From positions 186,001 through 250,000 of the forward strand of contig NW_027361731.1 in NCBI RefSeq assembly GCF_039654945.1: a stretch of DNA of 64,000 bases, in the 5' to 3' direction. Both the position numbers and the translations under genes were made by a program. Below, in pieces: positions 2,490-27,217 of this stretch. Every line of letters starts with the position of its first letter. Position 1 is the first letter of the stretch. The DNA comes from Dendrobates tinctorius (taxonomy: Eukaryota). The notes beneath the pieces were generated by a model. The model made no database searches and was not told the origin of the DNA. It was given only the letters and a program-made list of their open reading frames with translations.

Positions 2490-4341
2490 CAGCCCTCAAT
2501 GGTGAAGGGGAAAATGAACTCACAACATTCTCCACTCTGTATGCTCCCATCTCTGCCATGACCCAAAAGGGAGCGAATCCAAACTGGTCCCCCGAGGCTG
2601 AAGAGGCCTTCCACTCTCTCAAACTGTTCTTCTCCATCGTACCCGTTCTGCATTAACCGGATGTAAATAAACACTTCTTCCTTGAGGTGGATGCATCCAC
2701 ATTAGGGGACAGTGCTTACCCAGAAGTTTTCCTAGGGTCGCCATGTGTTCTACAGCTTCTTCTCCAAGGCCTTCTCTGCTACAGAACGTAACTACATCGG
2801 GGACCGTGAGTTGGTCGCCATTAAGATGGCTTTGGGGGAATGGTGATATCTGTTGGAGGACGCAGTTTATCTAGTAGTGATCTACACAGACCATAAGAAC
2901 CGGGCATATCTCCAGTCCGCTCAGAGGCTTAATCCTCGCCAAGCCAGGTGGTCTTTGTTTTTTGCCCGCTTTAATTTTCTTTTGCATTTCAGATCCGGTG
3001 ACAAGAATGTCAGAGCTGATACCCTCTCTCGCTCATTTCTGTCTGGGGACCAAGAGGAGGATCCTCAGTTCATCATTGAACCCTCTAAGATGGTTTTGGT
3101 TGCCCCTATCTGCCTGTCACGAATTCCTCCAGAAAAGACTTACAGAATTACAATTGATCTCTCGTCATTACTGGTGGCCATCCATAAGGAGGGAAATCTA
3201 TGCTTATGTGACTGCCTGTCCGACTTGTGCCCTCAGTAAAGTTCTTAGACAACTTCGTACCAGTTATGTCCTACCCTTACCCATACCATCTGTTTCTTGG
3301 CAGCACATAGCAATGGACTTCATTATGGATTTGCCAGTTTCCAAAGGTTGCACCGTCATCTGGGAAGTTGTGGATTGCTTCTCTAAAATGGCGCATTTTA
3401 CACTGTTGTCTGCTCTTCCATCCGCTCCTGAATTGGCTGACAAGCTTCATTAAGCATATTTTCCGCCTGCATGGATTTCCTTGCCACATCGTATCCGATC
3501 GAGGTTTGCAGTTTACTTCCACATTCTGGTGAGCGCTCTGTAAACCTCTGTATATCGTCTTGGATTTCTCCTCGGCCCATCACCTTCAGTCCAATGGACA
3601 AGTGGAGCGTGTCAACCAGGTCCTGGGCAACTACCTGCGACACTTCGTCAATGCCCATCATAATGATTGGGTGAAATTACTTCCCTTGAATCAGTTCTCG
3701 TATAATAATCATGTTGGTGAAGCCTCGGGAGAGTTGCCATTCTTCATTGTGTTTCGGTCGGCAACCTGAGGTTCCCCTTCCAGTGACGGTTCTGTCTGAT
3801 ATGTCGCTTCGGCAGATGTCCTTTCCAATGATTTTGTGAAGTTGTGGGAGGACACCAGAGTCACGTTCGAAGCATCCTCGGTTTGTGTTAAGAGACATGC
3901 GGACAGTAGCCACCTGGATCCTCCATGCTTCTGTCCTGGGGACAAGGTATGGCTTTTGTCCAGGTATGTCCAGCTGAAGGTCCCCTCTTATCGGGCCTTT
4001 CGAGGTGTTGAAGCGAGTCAACGAGGTCTCCTGTAAATTGAAGCTACTTCCTTCTCTGTGGATTCCAAATTGCTTTCATGTATCCCTACTGAAGCCAGTC
4101 ATCCTGAGTCCCTTCTTCAAGGATCCCAGTACCGCGCCCATGCCAACAGCCTTGGATAATGTTTTTGAAGTGGAGAACATCTTGGCCATAAAGAGGGTGA
4201 GAGGCAAGACCCTCTTCCTCATTGACTGGAAGAGATTTGGTCCTGAAGAGAGGTCCTGGGAGCCCAAGGAGAATATTCACGCTCATTCTTCTCCGGAACT
4301 TCCTTGATGGCCTGAGGAGGTTGGGGCGTAAAGGGGGGTAC
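2490..4341 (+). pseudogene. Degenerate Ty3/Gypsy pol 3' half (RNase H, integrase, chromodomain) with PPT
   Basis: YTDHKN...[31 protein letters not shown] and IDWKRFGPEERSWEP, spread over several frames. PPT aaggggggta at 4331-4340. Confidence 0.92.
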
Positions 4342-4512: not shown

Positions 4513-4949
4513 TTTCTCTTGTCACCTTCCACGACAGCCACATAGGAGGTTGTCTTCCCCGACCTAATAGGGGACAGGAACAGAGGTTAAATACCCCTCC
4601 CCTTCCTGCAATCACCAGTATTTTCCTGTCCCCTATGGGGCATGAAGAGGTCTACAATGGTGCTGCCGTGGCCCGCGATCAGAAGCACCCTATGTCTTTC
4701 ACCTGTACATGCTGGGCAGCCGAGGTCTGGGCCCTGCTCTCCTCCGGTGGCTGTTCCCGTCTCCTCCTGCTCGGTGGACTCGGGACCCTCCCACCTCTCC
4801 TGCGCTTCCTCGGGAGGTAAACGTGATGTGCGCACTGGTGGGCCAAAGGGGGGAGGAGGAGCACAGATGACGCTGGTCTCACGATTTTTAAAGGTCCGAG
4901 TGGGGAGCACCAGGTAAGACAACCTGTCTGACGCTGACTGCAGACGGAC

Positions 4950-6330
4950 ATGGACGATGACAAACCCTCTCTCTCTGCTTCTGCGGAGCCCAGCATACCC
5001 TCTCCTACTGTAAGTAGCAGGTGTCAGCCCCGGCTATCCTACCTTTATTTCCTACATTGGCTTAGCTTACCTTCTCTCTCTCTTATAGGGAGAAAAGGTC
5101 TCTGACCCTAAGAGGACCAGCCGCAAATGTAAAATGTGTACTGCTAGACTCCCCTCTTCGTCTGGCAAAAAGCTCTGCCAATCCTGTACGGAGGAGGTCC
5201 TACGTTCTGAACAGCCCTCTCTTCTGGATAGCATAAAATCCCTCATAAATCAGGAGGTTCAGGCCTCTATGGCCACTTTATCCCAGATCCCGGTGCCACA
5301 ACCACCTCCCTCTAAGAAGAGGAAGAAAGCTCCGATAGAATCTGACCCAGACTCGGGCGACATTCAGTCCTTGGGTTCGGAGTACGCTTGGGAGTATGAG
5401 GGTTCCACTTCCACTCCTAAATCAGGGAACAAGCAATATTACTTTTAGTTCCAATGATATGGGTGAACTAATCAGTATGGTTAGGGGCACCATGGGGGTG
5501 GAGTTGGAGGAAATTAAATACACGGTACAGTATGAGATGTTTGGGGGTCTGAAGCCCAAAGATCAAAAGGGGTTTCTTGTACACGAGAACATACAGAATC
5601 TCATCCTCCATGAATGGGGTCTCTCTGAAAAAGGCCTCAGCGTGCCCTCTGAGCTGAAAAAAACGTTTCTCCCTGGATGGTGATAATTCCTTATGGGAGA
5701 CCTCAAAGGTAGACGTGCATGTGTCCAGTGTATCTAAGAAAACAGCCCTTCCCTTTGAGGACTCTTCCCAGCTCAAAGATCCTATGCATCGAAAAATTGA
5801 GAGCTTATTAAGGAAGTCCTGGGACACCTCTACAAATCTGCTAAAAGCTAATATAGCTTCCACATGTATGGTCAGGTCCATGTTTCTATGGTTACGCACA
5901 CTTGAGGATCATCTGACTCAGGGTACCTCAAGGGAAGAGATACTGGACTCCCTACCCCTACTGCAGAAAGCGACGGGGTTCTTAGCTGATGCTTCAGCCG
6001 AGTCAGTCCGGGTAGCCGCAAAAGCAGCCCTTTTTTTCTAACTCTTCGAGAAGAGCGCTCTGGTTAAAATACTGGGGGGGACGACTTTACCTCCAAAGCC
6101 AAATTGTGCACCATCCCCTTCCAAGGCAACTATGTGTTCGAGCCTGTCCTGGATGACCTCTCTTCCGGAACATAAAAATCCTGGGGAGACGGTTTTTTCG
6201 TCCCTCCCGTGACCAACCCTCTCAGAGTACAGGGGGAAAGGCAAAACAGGGAGATGGAGTTATCCCAAAGGAGGCAAGGGCAAGAACATCCTTATCCCTA
6301 ACCAGCAACAGACCCCAGATAAGCAATGAC
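4950..6330 (+). pseudogene. DIRS ORF1 (gag-like: CxxC-CxxC finger, LAP2alpha-like domain); predicted intron 5010-5088; frameshifted
   Basis: ORFs 5134-5448, 5396-5683 and 5715-6041 (PFEDSSQLKDPMHRKIESLLRKSW). ATG 4950 joins in frame via a GT..AG intron. Confidence 0.8.
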
Positions 6331-6822
6331 AGCGCCCCGGTCAGGGGTCGACGCTTGCTCTTTTTCACCCAGTGGCAATCCATCTCCACAAATCAGTGGG
6401 ACCTCTGTACCATACGAGATGGACTAAAAATAGAGTTCGCGAGTCCTCCCCCACAATGTGTAAGGGTGACCTCCCTATAGTCTCCGCATCTCCAGGACTC
6501 CTTACTAAGAGGCCTACAAGATCTACTCAGGTCGAACACGATCTCGCGAGTGCCAAAGTTGGAGGAAGGACATGGCCATTACTCACGTCTCTTCCTGGTG
6601 ACAAAACCATCAGGGAAAAACCGAATCATCACAAACCTGAAGCCATTAAAAGAATCGATCCAGTACAGGTGATTCAAAATGGAGTCGATCAGGTCGGCAA
6701 TCCCGCTCATCGGACAGAACTGGGTAATGGCAACAGTGGATCTGAGGAATGCATACTACCATGTGCCAATCCATCCAGAGCACAGGAAATTCCTCAGATT
6801 CACAGTCTCTCAGGGTCAGCAA
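6331..6822 (+). pseudogene. DIRS reverse transcriptase, N-terminal part
   Basis: Reads ...FKMESIRS...VDLRNAYYHVPIHPEHRKFLRF, is broken by the hAT insertion, and continues at 18509 (HFQFNILPFG). Confidence 0.85.
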
Positions 6823-8031
6823 TAGAGTTGATCGAAACAGGTCGGTCAGATTCAAAAATCGCCGACTTTCGCCAAAATCGCCGATCGAAACCCGACCATA
6901 ACGTGAGGTCGGCCATGAGGTCGCCGATCAGCGCGCCAAAGTCGCGTTTCAAATGATGCTTTCAGCGCCTTTTCTCAGCCAATGATGGAGGACGCACACT
7001 GTGGGCAACGTGATGACATGCGCAGCGGCCACCACCATCTTGGAGAAGGGCATTAAAGTGATTGGCTGGCTTTGTGTGGCGTCACAGTGGGTATAAAAGG
7101 CTGTGACCGTCGACCGCCATCTTACTTCTGCCGATCTTACAATAGGGAGAGGTGCTGCTGCTGATTCCGAACAGGGAGTGCGTTAGGCAGGGAAGAAGAA
7201 AAAAAAACCTGCTTCTGCTGATAGCGCTTTTCACTGTACAGTTAGTGTGCAGTGAAAGGGGAGGATTTTTGCTTTTGTGCAGCAGCGCTGGTGGTGATTA
7301 GGCTGCCTTTTAAGGCTACCTGCTAGCTGCATTGCTGTGTGCACACTGCTGTTCAAACTGCTTTTTTCAAAGCACTCCAACTTTTATTATTTTGTCCTGG
7401 TGAGTTACTGAGCGTTCATTTTTTCACACACCGTATAGCGGTGTATGCTCCTCACACACTACCATGTACCGGCTGGTATCACGGACAAATAGAAGCTACC
7501 TGTGCGTGACTCTGGGGGAAAAAAAAGCCGAGGAGTTTTTCCGTTTTTCCAGACATACACCTTAGAGTCCTGTCCGTTTTTCAAACAGTTTTGTATATCT
7601 GCTGTTTGATTAACTAGACAGAGACAGCGTGTGTCAGTCCGTATACAAATACACAGGGCTTGACAACTTTCCATACACACACCGTATAGAGCTGTCCTAT
7701 TCTCAAACGGTATTGTATATCTGCCGTTCGCATTACAGTCACATTTATACAGAGTCAGCGTGTGTGTGACACTCCGTAAATACATATACGGAGATTTAGT
7801 TACACAAAAAGCGTATACAGCTGTACGGTTCCGTATATCTGCTTGTTGGATTACGGTCCAATACATACTGTGAGTCTGCTTGTTGGATTACGGTCCAATA
7901 CATACTGTGAGAGCGTCTGTGACTAACATAATATATACGTTGATTTAATTATTTTAATACACCTTACACAGCTGGACGCTCCTCATACAGTATAATCTCT
8001 CTGCTGGTATTATTGGTACATTTTCCCAAAC

Positions 8032-11000
8032 ATGAGGAAGTATGGTGGAAGAGGCCACGGACGTGGGCAGGGGGGGCGCAGCTGGTACTGATGGTGGTGG
8101 TGCATCGGCTGGTTCTGGCAAAAGCACAATAGCAGCTAAGGCAGGAGGTGCTGAGCCTGCGTCATCCTCTGGCCCAAGAAGGCCTGTAAGGTTGCCTTTT
8201 CTTGGAGTAGGAAAACCGCTTTTAAAGCTGGAGGATCAGGAACAGGTTTTGGCGTACGTTGCCGAAACAGCCACCAGCTCTATTGCCTCCTCTTCAGAAC
8301 GTTTGAAACCTGCAAGCACTGAGTCGTCAGTGCAGGGTTCTGGTCAGAAAAAACACCTTTTCTTGTGTCCTTCACCCCCACCAAAAGTTAAGGATGCGGC
8401 AGCCAACACTTCAGATTACTCTATGGAGCTCTTTTCACATACCATGCCTGGGTTATCCAGTCAAATCCTGATTTCCCCAGTCCAAGATGAATCTGACATG
8501 GAGTGCACTGATGCACAGCCACTGCTAGATGATTCTGCTGGTACATTGACCCACAGCACTACATTGCCCTCGCGGTCTATTGAGCCAGAATCTGACCCTG
8601 ATGAAACTCAGGTGCTCCTTCCCGCATACTATACCACCTTACACGGTGACACAGAGGAAGGTAAAGAGGAAGGTGCAGATAACTTTGAAGAGGAGGTGAT
8701 GGATGACCCAGTTCTGGACCCGGATTGGCAACCATTGGGGGAGGCGGGTGGCGCTGGCAATAGTTCAGATAATGAGAAGGATCCGCAGCAGGCATTGACA
8801 TCGCAGCAACGGTTATCTGGCAGGCCCGTAGCTGTCCAAAAACGTGGACCAAAAACTAAGAGTTGCAGGACAGCTTGGCCAGACGGTCAACTTAGCATAG
8901 CGTGCAAGGCCAGAAAATGTTTACCATAGTAGGAAGAGTGCAGTGTGGCACTTCTTTGTCCAAAATCCTACTGATGAGGCAAAGGTTACCTGTAAGAAGT
9001 GCGGAAGGACCTTTAGCCGAGGTAAACAACTCAGAAATTTGAATACCAGTTGCATGCTTAGACATTTAATCAACATGCACTTGCAAGCGTGGACGGACTA
9101 CAAAACCTCAGGTAGCACATGTGCACCTGCTCCGACTGAAGGTAGCCAACAATGCTCCATCGCTTCCTCCACTGTAAGACCACCGCCACCGTTAAGCACA
9201 CCACCAGCACTAAATGTGAAGGTGTCGTCACAAGGCCAAAGCACTCAGGGAATCACAATGTTTTTGCAACACAACAGTGAATCTAGGCCATCACCAACCC
9301 CCCTCACTCCATCCGGTCCACCGCTACTTCCCCGATATGCAGCTCTCCAGTCCAGCTCACCCTACCAGACACTCTGAGTAGGACAAGAAAGTACTCATCC
9401 TCTCATCCGCGTACACTTTGTTTGAACGCCTACATTGCCAAACTAATCTCATTAGAGATGATGCCCTACCATTTGGTTGAAAGAGAAGCTTTCCGCGACC
9501 TCATGGCCTACACTGTCCCACGCTATGACCTACCCAGTCGGCACTTTTCTCAAAAAGCCATCCCTACCCTCCACTGTCATGAGAAAGACCACATTGTCCA
9601 TGCACTAAAACAGTCAGTGAGTGGAAAGGTGCACCTCACAACAGATGCATGGACCAGTAGTCATGGCCAGGGCCGTTACGTGTCCATCACTGCTCACTGG
9701 GTTAATGTGGTGGATGCAGGCTCCACTGGGGACAGCGGCGGTGGAACAGTGCTGCCTAGCCCATGGTATAGGAAACAGTTGGCTGTAGGCTTTCGCTCCT
9801 CCTCCTCCTCTATCAGCGAAAGCTCGTCCACAGAGCGCAGTCGCATGAGTACTCCATCCGCAGCTGGCAGTGTTGCACACGAGGTGTCCCACTATCGAAC
9901 AGCTAGTGGTAAGCGTCAGCAGGCTGTGTTAAAGATTATGTCTTTGAGCGAGAACAGACACACCGCGGAGGTACTGGCTGACTACTTGCAGCGACAAACT
10001 GAGTCATGGCTGGGCAGTCTACATCTTGAGGCAGGCAAGGTAGTTAGTGATAACGGCCGGAATTTTGTGGCAGCCATAGCCCGTGCAAAATTCACACACA
10101 TACCTTGCCTGGCTCACACTTCGAACCTGTTGGTGCAGTGCTTCCTTAATAATTATCCGGAGTTAACATCCCTGCTCCATAAGGTGGGAAGACTGTGCTC
10201 GCACATCCATCGTTCGGCCGTACACTCCAGTCGTATGCAGAAGCTGCAGCGATTGCTCCACCTCCCCAAGCACCGCCTAATCATAGACGTTGCAACAAGG
10301 TGCAACTCCACCCTGCACATGGTTGAGAGGCTGTGCGAACAGAGGCAGGCTGTGATGCATTTGTGGGAGGATACACGGGCAGGCAGTTTGAGGGAGGACA
10401 TGGAGTTGTCGGGTGTGCAGTGGTCAAAGCTGAAAGACCTTGTAAAGTTCTTCAGTGTTTTGAGGAATGCACACGGCTGGTAAGCACAGATGAAGCCATC
10501 ATAAGCATGAGCATCCCACTTATGCGTCTGCTCATGTTTGATGCACATTAAGGATCAGGCGTCTGCAGCGGAGGAGGAGAAGGGGTGAAGCCTTGATGAC
10601 AGTCAGCCATTGTCTGGTTACGTAACTGTCCTGGACAAGGTGGAGGAAGAAGCGGATGAGGGGGATGATTATTTTGGGCAGGGGGATGATTATTTTGGGC
10701 AGGAGGATGCTTCTCTGGGGGCAAGAGAAAATATTGGCGTTCTAAGGTCAGGTGCAGTGTTTGTGCGTGACTGTAGGGATGTGGATTTGCCAGAAAGTGC
10801 TCCTCCACCCACCACTGGCAGTGCATCATTGACACCTGGAACATTGGCCCATATGTGCGATTATGCCTTGCGAATCCTAAAAAGGGACCCCCGCATTGCC
10901 AAAATGATGAGGGATGATGACTATTGGCTGGCCAGCATCCTCGATCCACGCTACAAAGGCAAATTACACAACATCATGCCACAGGAGAACCTAGAGATAA

Positions 11001-11538
11001 TATTGGCTAACAAACAAGCAACTCTGGTAAACCGTTTGTTTGAGGCTTTCCCAGCACACAGCTGCGGTGCTGGTTCTTCCACGAGCCGTAGTGGGCACAA
11101 TGGAAGAGGTGTTCATGGTGCACACAGCAGAAGTGGCGTTGGAGACAGGGGTTTAATGACCATGTTGTGGAATGATTTCTCAAGTACCGCTCACACGACT
11201 GCTAATACTGCATCGATTAAAAGTGACAGCAGTTGTCAACTATGGTTACAAACTACTTTTCCTCCCATATCGATGTTCTCCCACACAGGTCATTCCCCTT
11301 TGACTTTTGGGCCTCTAAACTGGACGCCTGGCCTGAATTGGCACAATATGCCTTACAGGAGCTCGCTTGCCCTGCTGCTAGTGTGTTATCTGAAAGAGTC
11401 TTCAGTGCTGATGGATCAATCCTGACAGAAAAAAGGACCCGTCTCTCGACCCAAAATGTTGATGATCTAACCTTCATTAAAATGAACCATGCATGGGTTT
11501 CAAAGGATTTTGTCCCACCTTCCCCTGATGACACATAG
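8032..11538 (+). pseudogene. hAT transposase (BED zinc finger, DDE core, C-terminal dimerisation domain), frameshifted
   Basis: WHFF..CKKC..HLINMH, HLTTDAWTS, VVSDNG, CLAH, DVATRCNST, LDPRYK and CPAASVLSERVFS across ORFs 8042-11538. Confidence 0.92.
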
Positions 11539-12029
11539 GTTGCCAGAAAACTGCCTCGCTTTTGTCCTCCTCTTCCTCGGACTTGCCCAATTACGCCCTT
11601 TGAAGCAGCTGAATGTCCAGCCAGCACATCAACATATGCCATTTTTTAAACATCCCTAACTGGGCTGCCCACCCCTCCCCCAACGGCTGGGGTCAAGACC
11701 TGGTGCACCCGGGCAAGTGCCGTTGCTCTGAACAGGTGGATGGGCCCACTGATGGCTGACTGCACTGGCACAGGGCCCCTCATAGTACAATACACTGTCT
11801 CTGACGGTAGGGGGGCCCACTCGCCGTCAGACACACCAGCATATTATGAGGGGTCCTGTGCCAGTACCGTCGCCCATGAGTGTGCCCCCCCTGCTTGGTC
11901 ATGGCCACAGCACTTGCAATTTGCAATACTTACCTCTCCCTCCTCCACCGCTGTGTAGTCTGGGCAGTTAAATCCTTCACAGGGACGGCCACTAGAAATT
12001 TGGTGTATTGATCAATGATGGTTAAGATG

Positions 12030-12520
12030 TAGCTATGGCCTGTCCTGCTGGCCTCTACCTTCAGATGATCAATGGCTACCCTTTGAAATGGACGTCAACT
12101 TACAAGCGGATGCAGTGGTGGTTTATCATCACCTTTCACAATCGTGATAGTCACAGACGTGTGACATTCCTGCCACCATTTTTCAATGTCTCCTCTCATG
12201 CCAATCCAATAGAATCACCTACGGCTTGTGGCTTCTGTCTTTGGCACTCCAAAATGACCAGACACATCATGATAGGCAGTGAGGACCATGTGTACATCTC
12301 TCCCAGTGATCACAATTTGATGGAGACGAGTAACGGTGATGTGATAAATGCTACTGCGATAAAGCAATCCTTTCTTCACAAAGAACCTTTTTCGCTTTCT
12401 CCACAGACACAGTAATTGAGGGTCTGCATTGCCTCTGCAACATCTACCGGGAGGTTTTCCAACGATAAATAATTCCAAAATTTCTGCCAACACTCGACTC
12501 TCCGTCTCTACTTGTATCCA
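12030..12520 (-). mobile_element. Gypsy integrase zinc-binding-region fragment inside the hAT
   Basis: GLLYR...AYHDVSGHFGVPKT in ORF 12215-12493 (-). Confidence 0.6.
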
Positions 12521-13370
12521 TGTAGTTTCCAGTAGTCTAGACTGGCTTACTGAGATTGAAATATATATGAAGATTTAAAAGTACCACAACACTGTACTCG
12601 TGTACGCTTTGAATACCTTTCCCTTTTTCTACTTTTTTAATTCTGGTGTAATACATAGTGAGCCTGTGAGTGTCTGTGTCTGACTCCAGAAGTATAGATG
12701 GAAATTTACCCCTAGACTGCATACACCTGGTATGTGCTGATACAGTATCTTGGTTGAAAAATTTGTATTACGGTATCATCTGTAGGATAGCCAACTGGGG
12801 GGGGGGGGGACCCTCTTCTTGCCGCAGACAAACACGAGACTGAGACAGAGTTTGTATTGAACAGTTCCGTTTTTATTGCCCATCCTTCTGTCGACCACAG
12901 CAATTCACCACAGCCGTTTCACATTTCTCTGTACCCAGGCCCCGGTACCTTCACTTCCTTTGTTACTATAATCGTGGCGTCCTCTGTGGCTCTTCACTGG
13001 GGCTGCCCTATGCCCATCCACCACAGCGCTTCACCAGTCTGAGCACACCGTCCGTATGATAGCCCCAGGCCGTCTTTGTCTGCGGCTACCGTCCTCTGGG
13101 CCACCCCCCGTGACCGCCTCAACTCTGTCCTCTCTGGAGCCTTTCCACTGTCTCTATTTCCTCAGCAGAACTTCCTCTTTACTGTGCTTCCTTCGCTGAC
13201 TGACTCTTCCAGAACCTTCCCTCAGCCTTTTATACTTCCAGTTCTGGTAACTCCGCCCACCATCACCTGACAGTTTCTCTGACCAATGGCAGTTATTCAG
13301 TCCCACTCCTACATTCTCCACTGCCCTCCAATGGGCAAGCTAAAACACTGCACCCTTTCTCTTTATCTTA

Positions 13371-13990
13371 GGCCTGTTTCACACTTCAGTTTTTCCTGTC
13401 AGTCCGAATCCGCCAAAATATCGGAAAACGGATCTGCAGACGGACTGGCAGGAACGGGTGGCATCGGATCGGCGGATGTACGGATCCGCCGAAGGGGAAA
13501 ATTTAAAGGAACCGCGCCTGTGAGAAAAAAAAAGTATTACCGGCGATGTAGCGCTCTCCGGCAGTGGGCATGGTGACTTCGGAGCGGTCATGGCAGCGGT
13601 GATGTGGCGGAAACAGGAGCGGTGATGTCGTGAGATGAGCAGGTGCGATGTCGTGGAGAAGAAGCATGATGCCGTAAAACGGGAGGAGCAGGTACGGGGA
13701 AAGAGAGAGAATTTTATCCAGGAGCCAGACAGAAATGCGGGTTAAATCTGGAAATATCGGATCCGCAGACCAAAAAAAGTTACATGCTCCGTCCGGCCCG
13801 CCAAGCAGACGGTAAAATCCTGGCGGATCCGTACTAAAGCGGATCGAACGGACGTCCATCCGTCAAGATCCGCCGATAATGCAACTCTATGAGGAAAAAA
13901 CGGATCCACCAAGAAAAATGGCGGATCCGTTTTTTTTTTCAAATCGGCGGATCTTGACTGATGGTCACAAATGGAAGTGTGAAACAGGCC
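13371..13990. mobile_element. PIF/Harbinger-type MITE
   Basis: TIR ggcctgtttcacactt; TSD TTA at 13368-13370 and 13991-13993. Confidence 0.9.
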
Positions 13991-14999
13991 TTAGCGGTTT
14001 CACACCTACACTGCGCTACACCTCTGCTTCTCACTACAGGCAGGTTTGTCTGTCAGTCCACCTTCCCTACATCATCCATAGTGAGTGAGCGTGTGTGGGT
14101 TACGCCTTCTATATATACGGTGAATCAGAGATAGCAATTTTTACACTATACTTGATACAGCTTGTATCTTGTTATACAGTACCTTTGTTCGACATTTAGC
14201 ATTACGGTCAAATCCATACTGAGTAAGCGTCTGAGAGTGACTACAGGACTTTATACGGAGATTTCAGTTGTACCTTAAAATATATATACTTGCTATCTTG
14301 TTATCCAGTACCTTTTTTCAACATTTTTTATTATGGTCAAACTCAGACTGAGTGAGCGTCTGAGGGTGACTCCGAAAATATATACCGAGATTTTCTATTT
14401 GGCCAACACTGTATACAGCTGTACGCTTCTGATACAGTACCATATATCTGCTGGTATTTTGGGTCCATTTTCCAAAACATGAGGAAGTATGGTGGAAGAG
14501 GACGTGGGCGTGGGGGGCCACCTGGTACTGGTGGTGCATCTGCTGGTAGTGCCAAAAACACAATAGCAGCTAAGGCAGGAAGTGTTGAGCCTGCGTCATG
14601 GTGTAGCTCTGGAAGGCCTGTAAGCAGGGCCTGCGTTAGGGGCAGGCAGACCAGGCAGCTGCCTAGGGCCCCTGCTCCTCTAGGGGCCCCCAGCCAGCGG
14701 CACATCACACAGCCGCTATGGGGCCCCTGTGAGGCAGGGGGGCCTGCCTGCCCCCAGCGCCGACTCCCGCCGCCGCATTGAAGGAGGCAGTGATGGAGGA
14801 GAGAGCGCCAGCTGACGCTCCCTCTCCCATCATTCCCCGCTCTGCCTCTGACACAGCGGGGGCGCGATGACGTCATTGCGCTCTCACTGTGTGCCAGACA
14901 GAGCAGGAAGAGACAGGAGCAGCCAGCATAGCGGGCACGAGGAGAAGGTGAGGAGTGTTTTTTTTTTTTTTTTAAAATCAGTGTGAGTGTTGGACTGTG

Positions 15000-16740
15000 G
15001 GGCCACTCTGGGGGGGCTATATACCATGCTCAGCTGTATCATACCATGCTGGGGGGGCCATATACCATGCTGGGCTGTATCATACCATGCTGGGGGGGCT
15101 ATATTCCATGCTGGGCTGTATTACACCATTCTGTATCATATCATGCTGGGGGGGCTATATACCATGCTGGGCCGTATTATACCAAGCTGGGATGTATTAC
15201 ACCATTCTGGGGCGCTATATACCGTGCTGGGCTGTATTATATCATGCTGGGCTGTATTACACCATTCTGGGGGGGGCTATAAACCATGCTGGGCTGTATC
15301 ATACCATGCTGGGGGGGCTATATACCATGCTGGGCGGTATTATACCATGCTGGGCTGTATTACACCATTCTGGGGGGGCTATATACCATGCTGGGCTGTA
15401 TTATACCGTGCTGGGCTGTATTATACCATTCTGGGGGGCTATATACCATGCTGAGCTGTATTATACCTTGCTGGGCTGTATTATACCATTCTAGGGGGGC
15501 TATATACCATGCTGGGCTGTATTATACTGTACTGGGCTGTATTATACCATTCTGGGGGGGCTATATACCATGCTGTGCTGTATTATACCATGCTGGGCTG
15601 TATTATACCATTCTGGGGGGCTATATACCGTGCTGGGCTGTATTATACCATGCTGGGAGGCTATATACCATGCTTGGCTGTATTCTACCATGTTGGGCTG
15701 TATTATACTATTCTGGGGGACTATATACCATACTGGGCTGTATTATACCATTCTGAGGGGGCTATATACCATGCTGGGCTATATTATACCATGCTGGACT
15801 GTATTATACCATGCTGGGGGGCTATACACCATGCTGGGCTGTATTATACTACTGGGCTGTATTATTCCATTCTGGGGGGCTATATACCATGCTGGGCTGT
15901 ATTATACCATGGTGGGCTGTATACCATGGTGGGCTGTGCTGTATACCATGGTGGGCTGGGCTGTATAGCATGTGGTGCTGGGCTATATACTATGTGGCTG
16001 TGTTATATACCATGGGGTACATTTTACATTATATTCTATAGGGGGAGGCTGTGTTATATAATATGGGGGGGCTACATTATATTCTATGGGGAGGTGGGCT
16101 GTATTATATTCTATTTGGGGCTACATTATATTCTATGGGGGGCTGTATTATATTATATTCGATGGAGGCTGCATTATACTATATGAGGAGGGCTACATTG
16201 TATTCTATGGAGGGGCTGCATTATATCCTATGAGGGGGTTGCCATATATTCTGTGGAGGGGCTGCATTATACTATATGGGGGTGGGGCTGCATTATTTTC
16301 TATGGGGGTTACATTATCTTCTGTGGAGTGGCTGCATTATACTCTGGGGTAGCTGCGTTATTCTCTAAGGGGTGGCTGCATTATACTATAAGAGGTGGGC
16401 TGCATTATATTCTATGGGGGTTACATTATATTTTATGGCGGGGCTGCATTATACTCTGTGGGGTGGCTGCATTATACTATATGTGGGCTGCGTTATACTG
16501 TATTGAGGACTATGGGGAATACATTATATGAAGAACTATGGGTGACTATGGCGGTGCATTATACTATATGGAGAACTATGCCGAGTGTATTATACTATAT
16601 GGAGGACTGAGCAGTGTATTTTAATATATGGAGGGCTATGAGAAGTTTATTATACTATATAGAGGACTGAGGAGTGTATTATACTATATGGAGGACTATG
16701 GGGCAGATTATATTATATGGAGGACTATGGGGTGTAAACT
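15000..16740. repeat. Minisatellite (~20-22-bp units, gggctgtattataccatgct/ggggggctatataccat), degenerating rightwards
   Basis: Directly visible tandem repeats; source of the spurious repetitive ORFs. Confidence 0.95.
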
Positions 16741-16784
16741 GTAGATGTGCTGCTGATAACATGATACTGTATGGTGATCTGTTA

Positions 16785-17182
16785 GGGTGTGTGCACACGT
16801 TGCGGATTAGTCTGTGACTTTTTCTGCAGAGAATCCATATATCTTGGCCGAAACCGCAGGGTAAAACACATGCATTTTTCCTGCGGATTCCTAGCATGTG
16901 TACAGTGGATTTGATGCAGGTTCTAGTGCGGTTTGGCAGTGCGGATGAGAGAGAGAGATTGATTTGTATGTCCCGGAACGTACACTGCAGCTGCGGTTCC
17001 GCAAAAAAGAAGTAACATGCTGTGGAAAATAAACCGCAGCAAATCTGTGTGGAATTTTCCGCAGCATGTGCATGGCGAATTTGGTTTTCCATAGGTTTAC
17101 ATGGTACTGTAAACCGCATGGAAACTGCTGCGGATCCGCAGGACCGGATCCGCAGCAAAAACCGCAACGTGTGCACACACCC
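16785..17182. mobile_element. PIF/Harbinger-type MITE
   Basis: Perfect 21-bp TIR gggtgtgtgcacacgttgcgg; TSD TTA at 16782-16784 and 17183-17185. Confidence 0.92.
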
Positions 17183-18508
17183 TTAGCAATCCATTAGTGA
17201 TCGTTCTGTTCCCATCATTCTTTCTCAGACGGTGGAAAGAGGCCGGGAAACAAGTGTTGAATGACTTCTTTAGTATTGTCGATCACACTCATTTAGCGGA
17301 CTGAACTCAGCACATGTAAATACAATCGAAATGCTTCTGTGATGTGCTATATGTTATCATTTGGGGCCCCAATTTAAACTTTGCCTAGGGCCCCACTTTG
17401 CCTAAAACCGGCCCTGCCTGTAAGGCTCCCTTTTCTGGGAGTAGGTAGATTGCTTTTTAAGCTGGAGCATCAGCAACTGTTTGGCTTACATTGCTGAAAC
17501 AGCCTCCAGCTCTATCGCCTCCTCTTCTGAAGTTGTAAAAAATGCAAGCACTGAGTCGTAACTGCAGGCTTCTGGTCAGGAGCAACCCCTTTCCTTGTGT
17601 CCTTCACCCACACCAAAAGTGAAGGATTGGGCAGCACACACTTCAGATTACTACATGGAGCTCTTTTCACATACCATGCCTGGGTTAATTAAAAATGGGG
17701 CCCATCAGATACTGGAGAATTATAAATGGGGCAGATCAGACACTGGAGCAGCATCTAAGGGGCCCATTATATACTGGAGCATTACAAATGGGGCCCATTA
17801 TATATGGAGCATTATTTGGGCCCATAACACACTGGAGCATCATCCATAGGGACCATCATATACTGTAGCATTATGTGGAGCTCATCATATACTGTATGGA
17901 ACATTATATGTGACTAATTATTCTGTATGGAGAAATATATGGGGCTCATTATTCTGTATGGCGCACAATGTGGTGGCCATAACACTGTATGGAGTAATAT
18001 ACTGTCCTGTTTTTGAGATATTGTACAATTTAAAATAGATCAGTCATGTCATGTAAGCAGTGAAGTATATGTCATTGTACTATACCTATATTTCTGTGGC
18101 GTATCGGAGCATCATGAGTTGTAGTATGTGTTAAAGGGGCGCACTGACACTCTTTGGCCCAGAGCACACGAAAATCTGGAGCCAGCCCAACCCCCCACAA
18201 CTTTAGCCAAATAACCCCCAGTTTTCAATGCGTAACTGTTATTATGAAGTAAATTAAGGTTGACAAGCTTCAGTAATAAGAATTGATGTTTTTAGCATTG
18301 AAATAGGCACTGTAGGTGTGTTTACTGTCCTCCATTCCCTGCCGACTTTGCTTCCCCATTGACTTGCATTGGGTTTCGTGTTTCAGTCGGACCCCGACTT
18401 TTCCCTATAGTCGGCCGATTTCATTCGACCCGACTTTTAAGAAAGTCGGGTTTCATGAAACCCGACCCGACCCGAAAAAAGGCAAAATCGCTCATCTCTA
18501 GTCAGCAA

Positions 18509-19886
18509 ATCAACCATTTTCAGTTCAACATCCTACCCTTCGGCATCTCATCGGCACGACGTGTCTTTACCAAGATCATGGCGGAAGCAGTGATTTTTCA
18601 TCTGGCGCCAGGGGAGATATGCATTATCACATATGTGGACGACTTCCTCGTCACTGCACCATCTATCTCACGTCTAAAGATGGACGTAGAAAAGACCCTG
18701 GAGATATTAAGATCCCTGGGTTGGATACCGAACCTGGAGAAATCAGAGATTGTAACATCCACAAGGAGAAAATTTTCTGGGAGTCGCCTTGGACTCAAGG
18801 CAAAGGACAGCCTTCCTACCCAAAGATCATCAGGTCGACTTTGTCCACAAGATAACCAGGTTCAGGAACCAGCGGACACCAACCCTCAGAGAGTCAATGT
18901 CTGCTCTTGGATCCCTGACTGCATGCATCCAGGCGGTTTCTTGGGCTTAGGCCCACACTCGAATCCTGCAAAGCCACGTGCTTCTACATTCCAGGCGGCG
19001 ACAAATTCCATTGTCCCGAAGGATTCCCCTCCCCAGTCATGTAAAATCGGCCCTGAGGTGGTGGTTGAACTACCGAAATCTTCAGAAGGGGCTCAGCTGG
19101 GATCAGCTTCCCCTGAAAACACTCTGGGGCGCAGTAGCAGAGAGATCCTATTTTCAGGGGCGATGACCACCGAGCATCAGCACCAGTTACTCAAAACTGA
19201 GGGAACTGAAGGCGGTAGAAGAAGCTCTAAAAGCGTCATCATTGCTAATCCAAAATCACCACGTCCGCGTCTACTCTGACAACATGACCACAGTGGCCTA
19301 CCTACGGTACCAAGGGGGTACGAAGTACGCCGGCCTGAAGGCAATAGCAGCAAGGATCTTCTCCTGGGCAGAGGAAAACTTGCTTTCTATCACAGCAGTG
19401 CATCTGAAAGGATCAGAAAACACCCAGGCAGATTTCCTCAGCCGGAAAGACGTCCATCCAGGGGAGTGGTGCCTGGACCAAACAGTCTTCTCATCCTTAG
19501 CATCAAGATGGGGGACTCCGGAGGTGGACCTATTCACCAACAGGCAAAATGGGAAGACAGAAGTATTCTTCTCCCTCAACCACATGGATGGAGCGCAAGG
19601 AATAGATGCCTTCGCCCAATGGTGAGATTTCAACCTCGCATATGCCTTCCCACCCATACCGATGCTAGCAAAAACACTACAGAAAATCTGGACAGACCGA
19701 GTCCCCACAATACTAATCGCCCCTCTGTGGCCCGGAAGAAGTTGGTACAGTGCCCTACTGGACATGGCCCAGGAAGGCCCCTGGCTTCTACCCCAAAAGA
19801 TCGACATCCTTCATCAAGGTCCTCTGCTACACCCGGACCTATGCAATTTGAACCTGGCAGCATGGTTACTGAGGCCAAAATCCTAA
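18509..19886 (+). pseudogene. DIRS RT C-terminus, RNase H and DNA N6-adenine methyltransferase-like domain
   Basis: LPFGISSARRVFTK, YVDDFLV, VYSDNMTTVAY, ADFLSR, WGTPEVDLF, YAFPP, LIAPLWPGRSWY. Confidence 0.9.
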
Positions 19887-20873
19887 GAGCCAAAGGACTC
19901 TTGGATAAGGTAATCCAAACCCTTCAGAAAAGCCGAAAACCAATTCCATCTATGCCAAGGTCTGGAAAAAGTTTTTCGTCCTTGTGCTTTCCAGGCACCC
20001 CTGATCCCTTCCACCCCAACGTAGCACAGATCCTAGACTTTTTACAAAAAGGACTAGAACTGGGCCTTACCCCCAGCACACTGAAGGTGCAAATATCAGC
20101 TCTTAGCGCCTTTTTTGATCTTGACCTGGCCAGCCACCGATAGATCAAACGTTTTATGGCTTGGGCATGAGATCCGCAGTCAGGTGCCTCCTTGGGATCT
20201 CAACATCGTGCTCAACAGCCTAACCCAAGATCCATTTGAGCCTTTAGATTCCATGACCATAAAGAACTTAACCCTTAAAACTGTCTTGTTAGTCACAATT
20301 ACTACGGCTAGATGTATAGGGCAATTGCAGGCCCTGTCACAATCACTGCAGATAGTATCATCTTGAGATTAGATCACACCTTTCTACCCAAAGTGGTCTC
20401 AAACTTCCATAGAGATCAGGATATTGTACTACCCTCATTCTGCCCAAGCCCTTCCAACCCTAAGGAAGAGACTTTCCACACTCTCAACATTCACAGAGTG
20501 GTCCTGTTTTACCTACAGCAGACTGAAGCCTGGCGGATTGACCAGAATTTGTTCATCCAGTTCTCAGGACGTAATAAGGGCAAGAAGGCGGCAAAGAACA
20601 CGATCGGCAAAGAACACGATCGCGAATTGGATCAGACAGTCTATCTGCCTGGCCTACTCATCACAGAAACTGGATCCACCAGCTTCACTGAAGGCGCATT
20701 CTACCTGTGCGATAGTAACATCATGGGCAGAGAGGGGGAATGCTTCGACAGAGCAGATATGCAGAGCCGCCATCTGGTCATCCATCCACACATTCACCCG
20801 GCATTACAGACTAAATTTCAATAGGGATTTAACTTTTGGCAGACGAGTTCTGCAGGCCGTGATCCCTCCCTAG
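19860..20873 (+). pseudogene. DIRS tyrosine recombinase
   Basis: STLKVQISALS, PPWDLNIVL, FLPKVVS, AHST and ICRAAIWSSIHTFTRHY; frameshifted. Confidence 0.9.
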
Positions 20874-20899
20874 AGAAATTAGCTGTTGGTATTACTCCG

Positions 20900-20983
20900 A
20901 TGTGGCTGTTGTGGAAGGTGACTTGAGAAAATAGAATTAGACCTACCAGTAATTCGGTTTCTAGGAACCTTCCACGATAGCAC
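20900..20983 (+). other. DIRS internal complementary region (ICR)
   Basis: 20900-20930 is complementary to the left end (4513-4543). 20928-20983 is complementary to the right end (~27160-27217). The two halves join at AAA. Confidence 0.9.
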
Positions 20984-22689
20984 TAATTTCCCTCCCTGTC
21001 TGATGTTTTACCGGATGATTCCTGCCCTTTGGTGGTAACTATTCATACTACAGTCATGGCCAAAAGTTTTGAGAATGACACAAATATTAATTTTTACAAA
21101 GTCTACTGCTTCATTTTTTCTAATGGCAATTTGCATATACTCCAGAATGTTATAAAGAGTGATCAGCTTAACAGCAATTACTTGCAAAGTCAATATTTGC
21201 CTAGAAAATTAACTTTATCCCCCAAAACACATTTCAACATCATTGCAGCCCTGCCTTAAAAGGACCAGCTAACATCGTTTCAGTGATTGCTCCATTAACA
21301 CAGGTGTGGGTGTTGATGAGGACAGGGCTGGAGATCAATCTGTCATGATTAAGAATGACACCACTGGACACTTTAAAAGGAGGCTGGTGCTTGGCATCAT
21401 TGTTTCTCTTCTGTTAACCATGGTTATCTCTAAAGAAACACGTGCAGTCATCATTGCACTGCACAAAAATGACCTAACAGGGAAGCGTATCGCAGCTAGA
21501 AAGATTGCACCTCAGTCAACAATCTATCGCATCATCAAGAACTTCAAGGAGAGAGGTTCCCTTGTTGCCAAAAAGGCTCCAGGGCGCCCAAGAAAGACCA
21601 GCAAGCGCCAGGACCATCTCTTAAAAGTGTTTCAGCTGCGGGATCGGGCTACCAGCAGTGCAGAGCTTGCTCAGGAATGGCAGCAGGCAGGTGTGAGTGC
21701 ATCTGCACGCACTGTGAGGCGGAGACTCTTGGAGCAAGGCCTGGTCTCATGGAGGGCAGCAAAGAAGCCACTTCTCTCCAGAAAAAACATCATGGACAGA
21801 CTGATATTCTGCAAGAGGTACAGGGAGTGGACTGCTGAGGACTGGGGTAAAGTCATTTTCTCTGATGAATCCCCTTTTCGATTGTTTGGGACATCTGGAA
21901 AACGGCTTATTCAGAGAAGACCAGGTGAGCGCTACCACCAGTCTTGTCTCATGCCAACTGTCAAGCATCCTGAAACCATTCATGTGTGGGGTTGCTTCTC
22001 AGCCAAGGGAATGGGCTCTCTCTGTCTTGCCTAAAAACACAGCCATGAATAAAGAATGGTACCAGAATGTCCTCCAAGAGCAACTTCTCCCAACCGTCCA
22101 AGAGCAGTTTGGCGATCAACAATGCCTTTTTCAACATGATGGAGCACCTTGCCATAAAGCAAAGGTGATAACTAAATGGCTCAGGGAACAAAACATAGAG
22201 ATTTTGGGACCATGGCCTGGAAACTCCCCAGATCTTAACCCCTTCACTACCAAGGGTGGTTTGCACGTTAACTACCGGGCCAATTTTTACAATTCTGACC
22301 ACTGTACCTTTATGAGGTCATAACTCTGGAACGCTTTCATGGATCCTGGTGATTCTGACATTGTTTTCTCGTGACATATTGTACTTCATGTTCGTGGTAA
22401 AATTGCATTCAAATAACTTGCGTTTATTTGTGAAAAAAACGGAAATTTGGCGAAAATTTTGAAAATTTCGCAATTTTCCAACTTTGAATTTTTATGCCCT
22501 TAAATCACAGCGATACGGCACACAAAAAACTTAATACATAACATTTCCCACATGTTTACTTTACATCAGCACAATTTTGCAACCAAAATTTTTTTTTGCT
22601 AGGAAGTTATAAGGGTTAAAATTTGACCAGCGATTTCTCATTTTTGCAACACCATTTTATTTTTAGGGACCACTTCACATTTGAAGCCA

Positions 22690-25225: not shown

Positions 25226-27217
25226 AAATACATTTTCTTTTAGTTTTATTATTTTTCTCTAACTAAGGGGGTGATAACGGGGGGTTTGATTTACGATTTA
25301 TGGCGGTTTTTATGTTTGGCGGCTGTTGCACGCTAAAAGACGCTTTTTATTGTAAAAATAGTTTTTGCATCACCACATATTGTGAGCTATAATTTTTCCA
25401 TATTTTGACCCACCGAGTCATGTGAGGTCTTATTTTTTGCGGGACGAGTTGACGTTTTTATTGGTACCATTTTCGGGCACGTGACATTTTTTGATCGCTT
25501 TTTATTCCGATTTTTGGGATGCAGAATGAACAAAAACCAGCTTTTCATGAATTTCTTTTGGGGGGTGCGTTTACACCGTTCCGCGTGCGGTAAAATTGAT
25601 AACGCGTTTTTATTCTTCGGGTCAGTACGGTTACAGCGATACCTCATTTAGGTCGTTTTTTTATGTTTTGTCGGTTTTTTGCAATGAAAACAATTTTATA
25701 TAAAAAATAATTATTTTTGTATCGCTTTATTCTGCGAGCTATAACTTTTTTATTTTTTTGCGGATGATGCTGTATTGTGGCTCGTTTTTTGCGGGACAAG
25801 ATGACGTTTTCAGCGGTACCATGGATATTTATATGCGTCTTTTTGATCGCGCGTTATTGCACTTTTTGTTCGGTGGTATGATAATAAATCATTATTTTTT
25901 GCTTCGTTTTTTATTTTTATTTTTTAAGGGGTTCGCTAAAGGGGTTAACTAATGGGACAGTTTTATAGGGCAGGTCATTACGGACGCGGCGATACCAAAT
26001 ATGTGTACTTTTATTGTTTTGTTTTTTTTTTATTTTCAAAAAATGGATTTATTGGGGAATATTTTTTTTTTTTTAACTAATTTATTTAGCGATTTTTTTT
26101 TTAAATTATTTTTAACACTTTTTTTTTTTTTTTTTTTTACTTTATTACCTTGTCCCAGGTGGGACATCACTGTCCTGTGACAGATCGCTGATCTGTCACA
26201 TCACAGATCACTGTGACAGATCAGCGATCTGTCACAGGCACTGCTGCAGACTTCCTCATGCCTGCGCTTTGCAGGCACTGAGGAAGCCAGCTTCCTCAGG
26301 CCCCCGAAGGCCCCCGTCGCCATCTTGGATTCGGGGGCCTGGAGGAAGGGAGTCCCCCGCAGCAGCGCTGCACATTGCGCTGCCGTGGGGGGCTCAGGGA
26401 AGCACGGAGGGAGCCCCCTCCCTGCCGATGCTTCCCTTTAACCCCCGGTACACCGCGATCGCGTTTGATCGCGGTGTGCAAGGGGTTAACGTGTCGGGGG
26501 CGGTCCGTGACCGCCCCTGACACATTGTGCCGGGTGTCAGCTATGATAATTAGCTGACACTCGGCCGCGATCAGCGGCGCTCACCACGTGGGCGCCGCTG
26601 ATCGCGATGACGTAATATTCCGTCCATGGTAATTAGGTCCATGGTCACATGGACGGAATATTACGTCAATTGTAGGTAAGGGGTTAATCCCATTGAGAAC
26701 TTGTGGTCAATCATCAAGAGATGGGTGGACAAACAAAAACCTTCAAATTCAGACAAAATAAAAGCATTGATTTTGCAAGAATGGACTGCTATCAGTCAGG
26801 ATTTGATCCAGAAGTTGATTGAGAGCATGCCAGGGAGAATTGCTGAGGTCCTGAAGAAGAAGGGTCAACACTGCAAATATTGACTTGCTGCATTAACTCA
26901 TTCTAACTGTCAATATAACCTTTTGTTACTCATAATATGATTGCAATTATATTTCTGTATGTGATAAAAACATCTGACAAACACACATAAAAACCAGAGG
27001 GCAGCAGATCATGTGAAAATATAATATTTGTGTCATTCTCAAAACTTTTGGCCATGACTGTAGTGTGTCCAGGAAAACACTGGTGTTTTCAGGAAGGGGA
27101 GGGGTATTTAACCTCTTTGTGTTCCTGTCCCCTATTAGGGCGGGGAAGACAACCTCCAATGTGGCTGTCGTGGAGGGTTCCTAGAAACGGAATTACTGGT
27201 AAGTCTAATTCTATTTT

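Follow-up and report, generated by a model that had tools for sequence, protein, structure and literature searches.

Retrotransposons copy themselves through RNA and so normally lose introns. Some retroelements do make use of splicing: Ogre/CRR elements splice between open reading frames (ORFs), and retroviruses translate Gag from unspliced RNA and use splicing for env and accessory genes. In copia of Drosophila and BARE1 of barley, splicing yields an mRNA that encodes Gag only, and the unspliced RNA is the one that is replicated (PMC3735527). Partitioning of RNA by splicing is already known in retroelements; what appears to be new here is an intron at the start of gag in a DIRS element. The case comes from a 64,000-nucleotide (nt) stretch of the genome of the frog Dendrobates tinctorius (assembly GCF_039654945.1, contig NW_027361731.1, positions 186,001 to 250,000 of the forward strand; hereafter the window, numbered from its first base). 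The sequence in question sits in the decayed remains of a DIRS retrotransposon, which has inverted terminal repeats, a LAP2alpha-type gag, a reverse transcriptase (RT) and a recombinase-like tail. We consider it likely that this dead copy preserves, at positions 5010–5088, a genuine, inherited U2-type intron that belongs to a frog DIRS family, and that splicing of this intron separates translated from replicated RNA.

The element resembles the DIRS families of Xenopus (PMC9210276) in having inverted terminal repeats, a LAP2alpha gag-like ORF1, a region with RT/RNase H and methyltransferase-like parts, what looks like a tyrosine-recombinase ORF, overlapping frames and possibly an internal complementary region. 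It differs from published descriptions of DIRS1-like elements (PMC9210276, PMC3266345) in that the frog ORF1 is split by a conserved intron just past the start codon. Those two papers contain no occurrence of intron or splicing, and a DIRS gag intron goes unmentioned in PMC3266345, PMC9210276, PMC7192593 (on Dictyostelium DIRS-1, whose extrachromosomal cDNA intermediates it sequenced; artificial reporter introns only) and PMC3212892; an older mention is possible. Copia and BARE1 share with the frog element the keeping of splice sites through retrotransposition and probably the use of spliced RNA for Gag, BARE removing a 104-nt intron. Their splicing, however, removes or disables pol downstream of gag and raises the Gag:Pol ratio, and their Gag can also be read from unspliced RNA, whereas the frog intron lies at the very start of gag and its removal appears to be needed for Gag in most lineages. 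The element class (DIRS, not long terminal repeat) and the hosts (frogs) differ as well. The retroviral major 5′ splice donor and Ogre/CRR offer a further likeness: their genomic RNA has a consensus donor close to its 5′ end, and unspliced RNA is preserved for packaging. In these systems, too, splicing acts past gag, and unspliced RNA can serve for Gag; relative to retroviruses the frog arrangement would be reversed, with Gag made from spliced RNA.

The interval 5010–5088 is supported as having every sequence property of a U2-type intron: a 5′ splice site, a branch motif, a pyrimidine tract and a terminal AG. Exon 1 of gag (4950–5009, + strand) is an ATG followed by 19 codons (MDDDKPSLSASAEPSIPSPT), the last two of which, CCT ACT, lie directly 5′ of the donor. 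The 79-nt, phase-0 GT–AG intron (5010–5088, + strand) opens with the hexamer GTAAGT (5010–5015; context ACT/GTAAGT) and contains the yUnAy motif CTTAC, whose A stands 19 nt before the intron's 3′ end; the 20 nt that precede the TAG acceptor are 90% pyrimidines (AG at 5087–5088; context TAG/G). Exon 2 has a first open stretch of 119 codons (5089–5448, + strand), which begins in phase 0 with GEKVSDPKRTSRK, continues into a CxxC-x12-CxxC finger (CKMC...CQSC, cysteine codons from 5128) and runs into a disabling TAG at 5446–5448. An earlier note on this DNA, written from the sequence alone, had described an ATG at 4950 that opens exactly 20 codons, a GTAAGT at 5010 heading a 79-nt interval that ends in AG at 5087–5088, and a phase-0 join that completes a CxxC–CxxC finger whose first cysteine codon lies upstream of the next ATG. 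On the sequence, these coordinates hold (the ATG exon ends at 5009, and the cysteine codon is at 5128–5130 with the next in-frame ATG at 5134), and the identification of the region as the 5′ end of a DIRS gag is likewise supported. The same note had the unspliced frame stopping at a TAG within a few codons, which is wrong: the frame of ATG 4950 crosses the entire interval (79 = 3n + 1) and ends at TGA 5103–5105, giving a product of 51 amino acids. The TAG at 5086–5088 belongs to the exon-2 frame, which it shuts just 5′ of the acceptor.

An exhaustive search of representative proteins with exon 2 returned 37 relatives, the best of them 78% identical (P0001, Ranitomeya imitator). All 37 are from neobatrachian frogs, the species or genera being Ranitomeya imitator, Anomaloglossus, Phyllobates, Eleutherodactylus coqui, Bufo bufo, B. 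gargarizans, Engystomops pustulosus and Dendropsophus ebraccatus, a hyloid range that reflects the sensitivity of a 119-residue query and not necessarily the true age of the intron. Young copies, recognized by identical proteins encoded at several loci, exist among these frogs. A word-based protein search with exon 2, the length window of which leaves out full gag proteins, found nothing. We then read the DNA itself at 12 genomic loci, representing 11 lineages, in six frog species other than D. tinctorius (R. imitator, E. coqui, B. gargarizans, B. bufo, E. pustulosus and D. ebraccatus).

Position, phase and splice signals, GT and AG included, are kept across the 11 diverged DIRS lineages. Exon 1 ranges from 10 to 43 codons with a barely conserved peptide, and locus L002 has a mutated start (ACG for ATG). 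The donor reads GT[AG]AGT in 10 of the 11 lineages, usually after ACT; intron length varies from 76 to 358 nt, the phase is 0 in every lineage, the acceptor is CAG or TAG with a pyrimidine content of 0.60–0.90 before it, and exon 2 opens 13–31 codons ahead of the first finger cysteine. L001 and the window match at both splice sites, but their intron interiors are too different to align. The nearer relative L002 has an intron 77% identical to that of the window, best kept over its first ~30 nt and last 20 nt. All 13 genomic copies examined retain the intron (the window and L001–L012 without L010, the identity of which to L009 was assumed and not compared base by base); two Logan contigs also retain the interval, and of these L013 fits the phase-0 scheme. 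In Eleutherodactylus (L004/L005) exon 2 opens with an ATG that the gene model takes as its start. The DNA still has the upstream ATG exon, the GTAAGT, the tract and the TAG; because the DNA has an intron that the model omitted, the pattern is independent of the gene predictor. At the level of genomic DNA, the comparison demonstrates a conserved layout, with phase and splice signals maintained in diverged lineages whose intron interiors have drifted apart.

A chance origin was assessed with 2,000 dinucleotide shuffles per locus of the 520 nt upstream, holding the homologous start of exon 2 fixed and scoring an ATG-ORF of 8–50 codons that ends directly at GT[AG]AGT, 60–400 nt upstream of that start. 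The pattern arose in 34 of 2,000 shuffles of the window (~1.7%) and in 1.1–2.9% of shuffles across loci, and is actually observed in 9 of the 11 lineages, a fraction that is not a probability of independent origin, as the lineages share ancestry. The window alone is only suggestive; the strength of the case comes from conservation, which shows that the pattern was maintained while the surrounding sequence diverged past alignment. One could read the signals as chance splice-like motifs in a 5′ untranslated region and the gene models as artefacts of a predictor seeking a start codon, in keeping with the ~1.7% for the window and with the obviously chimeric nature of several supporting models (P0001–P0008). 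We regard this as extremely improbable, given that the pattern was verified in the DNA of nine diverged lineages, including one that the predictor missed, and that two annotation pipelines agree for Engystomops, in which the RefSeq model (P0024) and an independent submitter model (P0040) share the spliced N terminus. The Ranitomeya models P0006 and P0008 have the N terminus MDGSLCPASAEPSATPAT/GEKSAPK..., with a junction identical to that proposed for the window.

Actual splicing, and a switch between genome and mRNA, are what we infer from this conservation. A tiny exon 1 would supply the start codon and a few poorly conserved codons, and the body of gag would lie in exon 2. Because the copies arise by reverse transcription and retain the intron, the template for reverse transcription would be unspliced RNA. 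Full-length Gag would be made from spliced RNA, since in most lineages (9 of 11) the unspliced frame of the ATG exon is closed within the intron or shortly past it, and since the first finger cysteine is encoded ahead of any in-frame ATG in the window and the copies nearest to it. Splicing would thereby partition the transcripts into one pool that is translated and another that is replicated, and the intron is probably a working part that separates protein-making RNA from copied RNA. Unspliced RNA might escape by way of intronic packaging signals, through its export in unspliced form or from a separate transcription start. At an Engystomops pustulosus locus (L010, 3941–6442; also L009), more than 820 open codons follow the gag stop in the same frame and finish in a recombinase-like end. 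The frame is that of the recombinase, which overlaps the RT frame and is distinct from it, and a Pfam search with it gave no match; if read-through of the gag stop were real, the spliced mRNA would feed all of the proteins.

Several observations weigh against a splicing-based partition. With donors close to consensus and good tracts of pyrimidines, splicing should be efficient, and the short window intron suits efficient intron definition; this is hard to square with a requirement for unspliced template RNA. The window copy is itself non-functional. The donor of L007 is weak (GTATTC), and the Logan contig L014 is ambiguous: its acceptor is weak, and it can be fitted only as phase 2. Support at the protein level comes from gene models whose RNA basis is not visible and some of which are fused to host genes, and word searches gave no transcript-derived protein with the spliced N terminus, only genome annotation models (P0002 in part, P0024 in part). 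In Eleutherodactylus, exon 2 has an ATG of its own, and in the Bufo bufo lineage L011 the 159-nt intron is open in frame, such that splicing is not strictly required at either. Finally, the junction 5009/5089 was found in none of four public runs (X1, X2, X3 and X5), all of which are small-share sets of assembled contigs, aligned at 85% likeness; contigs drop rare forms, the RNA status of X1–X3 (one organism) is only guessed, and X5 (another organism) is probably DNA.

The lineages that do not strictly need splicing (L004/L005 and L011) would allow the intron to act in expression or to help the element evade silencing. The intron may be spliced and yet serve mainly to boost expression or export, or to give the element the look of a host gene under HUSH-type surveillance, with the gating of Gag as a side effect. 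Consistent with this, the exon-1 peptide is hardly conserved, the ATG and splice signals being what is kept, Gag could be made without splicing in those same lineages, and HUSH silences intronless mobile elements in human cells, in which introns protect (PMC8770142). In 9 of the 11 lineages the unspliced frame ends early, which makes Gag dependent on splicing there. We see this as possible but doubtful.

The missing junction also raises the question of whether the signals are bound without being spliced, or are spliced only rarely, with GTAAGT as a site for the U1 small nuclear ribonucleoprotein and the ATG exon as a regulatory upstream ORF for a gag start farther downstream; the bound site might protect from premature polyadenylation or form part of an RNA packaging or dimerization structure. 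Contigs covering the intron occur in all four runs, the first ~30 nt of the intron are among the parts best conserved between the window and L002, and the bin 4964–5057 has the highest family depth in the 5′ region of gag. Binding alone would leave unexplained a pyrimidine tract and YAG at a codon boundary, in phase, in all 11 lineages, and, for the window and the copies most closely related to it, the position of the first finger cysteine ahead of every in-frame ATG. It is a very unlikely account of these signals, and an inherited intron remains our preferred one.

The same runs bear on the genomic copies of the family. Contigs cross the whole intron (4946–5114 in X1 record 2; 4926–5097 in X5 record 26), and of the 40 best-supported base differences none falls on 5010–5015 or 5085–5088 and four are in the interior of the intron. 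Over the 30 nt before 4980 (a loose end in X3), the contigs of other copies have ATGGATGGAGAC..., which places their ATG at the same position and in the same frame. Intron-less genomic copies, which the earlier note had proposed looking for, did not turn up: no intron-less joint is listed among 6,264 contigs from X5, the probable DNA run. X2 record 12 aligns from 5087 onward and has 28 unmatched letters before that point, which could be the diverged exon 1 of a spliced form or unrelated flank. The joints 5017>5201 (X1) and 5021>5209 (X2) were considered as splices and rejected for their non-canonical ends and undefined intervening sequence, and are read as contigs of diverged subfamilies. As judged from these contigs, family copies seem to keep the intron and the start codon, and intron-less DNA copies are not evident.

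A second donor-like site, CAG/GTAAGA, lies at 4914–4919 (+ strand; GT at 4914–4915), 36 nt before the gag ATG. The earlier note had pointed out this site and suggested that it might splice to downstream ORFs; the site is there, and for such splicing we found no support beyond its recurrence in some lineages. A GT[AG]AG within 50 nt upstream of the ATG is present in the window, L002, L001, L004/L005 and L008 and absent from L003, L006, L007, L009, L011 and L012, three further lineages having weaker upstream GTA sites. This recurrence, in about half of the lineages, is more than chance. Were the 4914 donor joined to 5089, the gag ATG would be spliced out and the next in-frame ATG, at 5134, would be preceded by an ATGTAA mini-ORF. 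Putative promoter-like motifs occupy 4868–4893 (+ strand), with TGACG at 4868–4872 and the TATA-like TTTTTAAAG at 4885–4893, and might put the start of transcription at or beyond the 4914 donor. In many lineages, TGACG/TGACGTCA (cyclic AMP response element-like) and TTTAAAG/TATTTAAGG (TATA-like) recur 40–140 nt upstream of the gag ATG. These motifs hint at a putative promoter between the terminal repeat and gag.

The gag intron also invites comparison with the fate of DIRS gag in mammals, where it was exonized as the LAP2alpha domain of TMPO and in ZNF451, the colonizing DIRS having been inferred to carry a splice acceptor (PMC4495291). The acceptor of frog gag exon 2 is a site of this kind. 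In the frog models P0002–P0005, host exons are connected to exon 2 at its G[DE]K start or at a point slightly upstream; in P0002 the host exon is joined just upstream of exon 2 and the gag intron is then used. We hypothesize that the exon-2 acceptor is linked to the mammalian exonization of LAP2alpha, our comparison having covered frog sequences only. Chimeric annotations that fuse host exons to the acceptor of DIRS gag exon 2 comprise P0001–P0008, P0020, P0021 and P0037, with host parts from a flavin monooxygenase, a TM9 family member, the AP-3 beta subunit and zinc-finger proteins; they represent either real exonization or a systematic annotation error caused by a strong acceptor. A broader proposal would have the intron act both as a host-gene disguise, through HUSH-type escape, and as a gate on Gag, with the exon-2 acceptor having enabled the twofold capture of LAP2alpha in mammals (TMPO and ZNF451) and the upstream donor tuning retention of the start codon. 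Under such a disguise, copying unspliced RNA would make every new insertion an intron-bearing transcription unit. We think this combination unlikely.

The element that carries the intron can be followed across much of the window. Its left inverted terminal repeat (4524–4633, + strand) matches the inverse of 27178–27070 at 90.8% over 4524–4628, and related repeats are present in L002, L001 and L011. Within the left repeat, a palindrome pairs 4566–4580 with 4625–4640 (TAGGGGACAGGAA ... TTCCTGTCCCCTA) in a predicted hairpin with a loop of ~45 nt; in the Bufo bufo lineage L011 (~2395–2470) there is a corresponding palindrome pair of changed sequence (GTAGGGGCAGGAAC ... GTTTCCTGTCCCTAC). The right inverted terminal repeat (27070–27178, − strand), which probably belongs to the same element, stands 6 kb past the end of the recombinase as a result of later insertions, a Tc1/mariner insertion and an assembly gap lying between them. 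On the + strand, the right repeat is adjoined by CTGGTAAGTCTAATTCTAT (27178–27215), which has the consensus donor G/GTAAGT, also precedes the left repeat in other family copies (a loose end at 4513 in X3) and is probably a terminal extension or circle-junction sequence. Its translation, GRFLETELT, appears in the chimeric frog gene models P0001, P0007 and P0008.

The rest of gag, a LAP2alpha-like body (5441–6330, + strand), is broken by frameshifts and stops. Its segment 5658–6038 is 52% identical (E = 4e-41) to residues 220–345 of P0024, inside the Pfam LAP2alpha domain of that protein; the gag fragments of the window, exon 2 included, gave no significant Pfam match. A LAP2alpha domain has been reported in ORF1 of Xenopus DIRS families (PMC9210276), and Abascal et al. 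traced the domain to DIRS gag (PMC4495291). Self-comparison found no second copy of gag in the window. The N-terminal half of RT (6346–6822, + strand) has one internal stop and ends ...FLRFTVSQGQQ. Its C-terminal half continues at 18509–20870 (+ strand) with RNase H-like, methyltransferase-like and tyrosine-recombinase-like regions and contains several stops and frameshifts; Pfam RVT_1 matches within 18359–19279 (E = 3.8e-10), and YVDD can be read in the translation at 18632–18652. Recombinase-like motifs seen by eye in 20085–20870 (...ITTAR..G.LQAL..., H-x-x-[R>C]... and ...W.S..TF..HY, with ...HTFTRHY at 20787–20816) resemble the recombinase-like end of the long open frame of L010; Pfam and PDB sequence searches on these decayed fragments gave no match, and no DDE integrase was found inside the element. 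Directly after the last coding region, 20895–20930 (− strand) is an inverted match to the outer left terminal repeat (4513–4548, 88.9% over 36 nt), the only such match found and a possible internal complementary region.

The RT is split by an 11.7-kb hAT-type DNA transposon that is foreign to the DIRS element (6823–18500, + strand) and is flanked by an 8-bp duplication, GTCAGCAA, at 6815–6822 and 18501–18508. It begins TAGAGTTGATCG and finishes CTCATCTCTA, and encodes zf-BED (8901–9374) and hAT dimerization (11227–11535) Pfam domains. Contig depth is very high from ~6844 onward, up to ~600,000 in X5, and its ends are therefore assigned to a high-copy repeat. Given this insertion and the frameshifts and stops in gag, the window copy is a fossil and nothing is functionally expressed from the locus. 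Between the end of the DIRS recombinase and the right repeat lies a Tc1/mariner transposase (21306–22323; HTH_Tnp_Tc3_2, DDE_3), and other mobile elements near the DIRS are a non-LTR-type RT ORF (RVT_1, weak zf-RVT) and a Gypsy-type Integrase_H2C2 fragment, at 32–1720 and 2962–3453.

Annotation of DIRS gag that is based on ORFs overlooks the true start codon, and the conserved intron at the start of gag is a concrete, testable handle on how the overlapping DIRS genes are expressed. A family that keeps an intron for tens of millions of years must shield unspliced RNA for copying and use spliced RNA for protein. The intron further offers a simple explanation for the ease with which DIRS gag is spliced onto host genes, namely that gag exon 2 carries a ready-made acceptor, and the LAP2alpha domain of mammals may be an older case of the same process.

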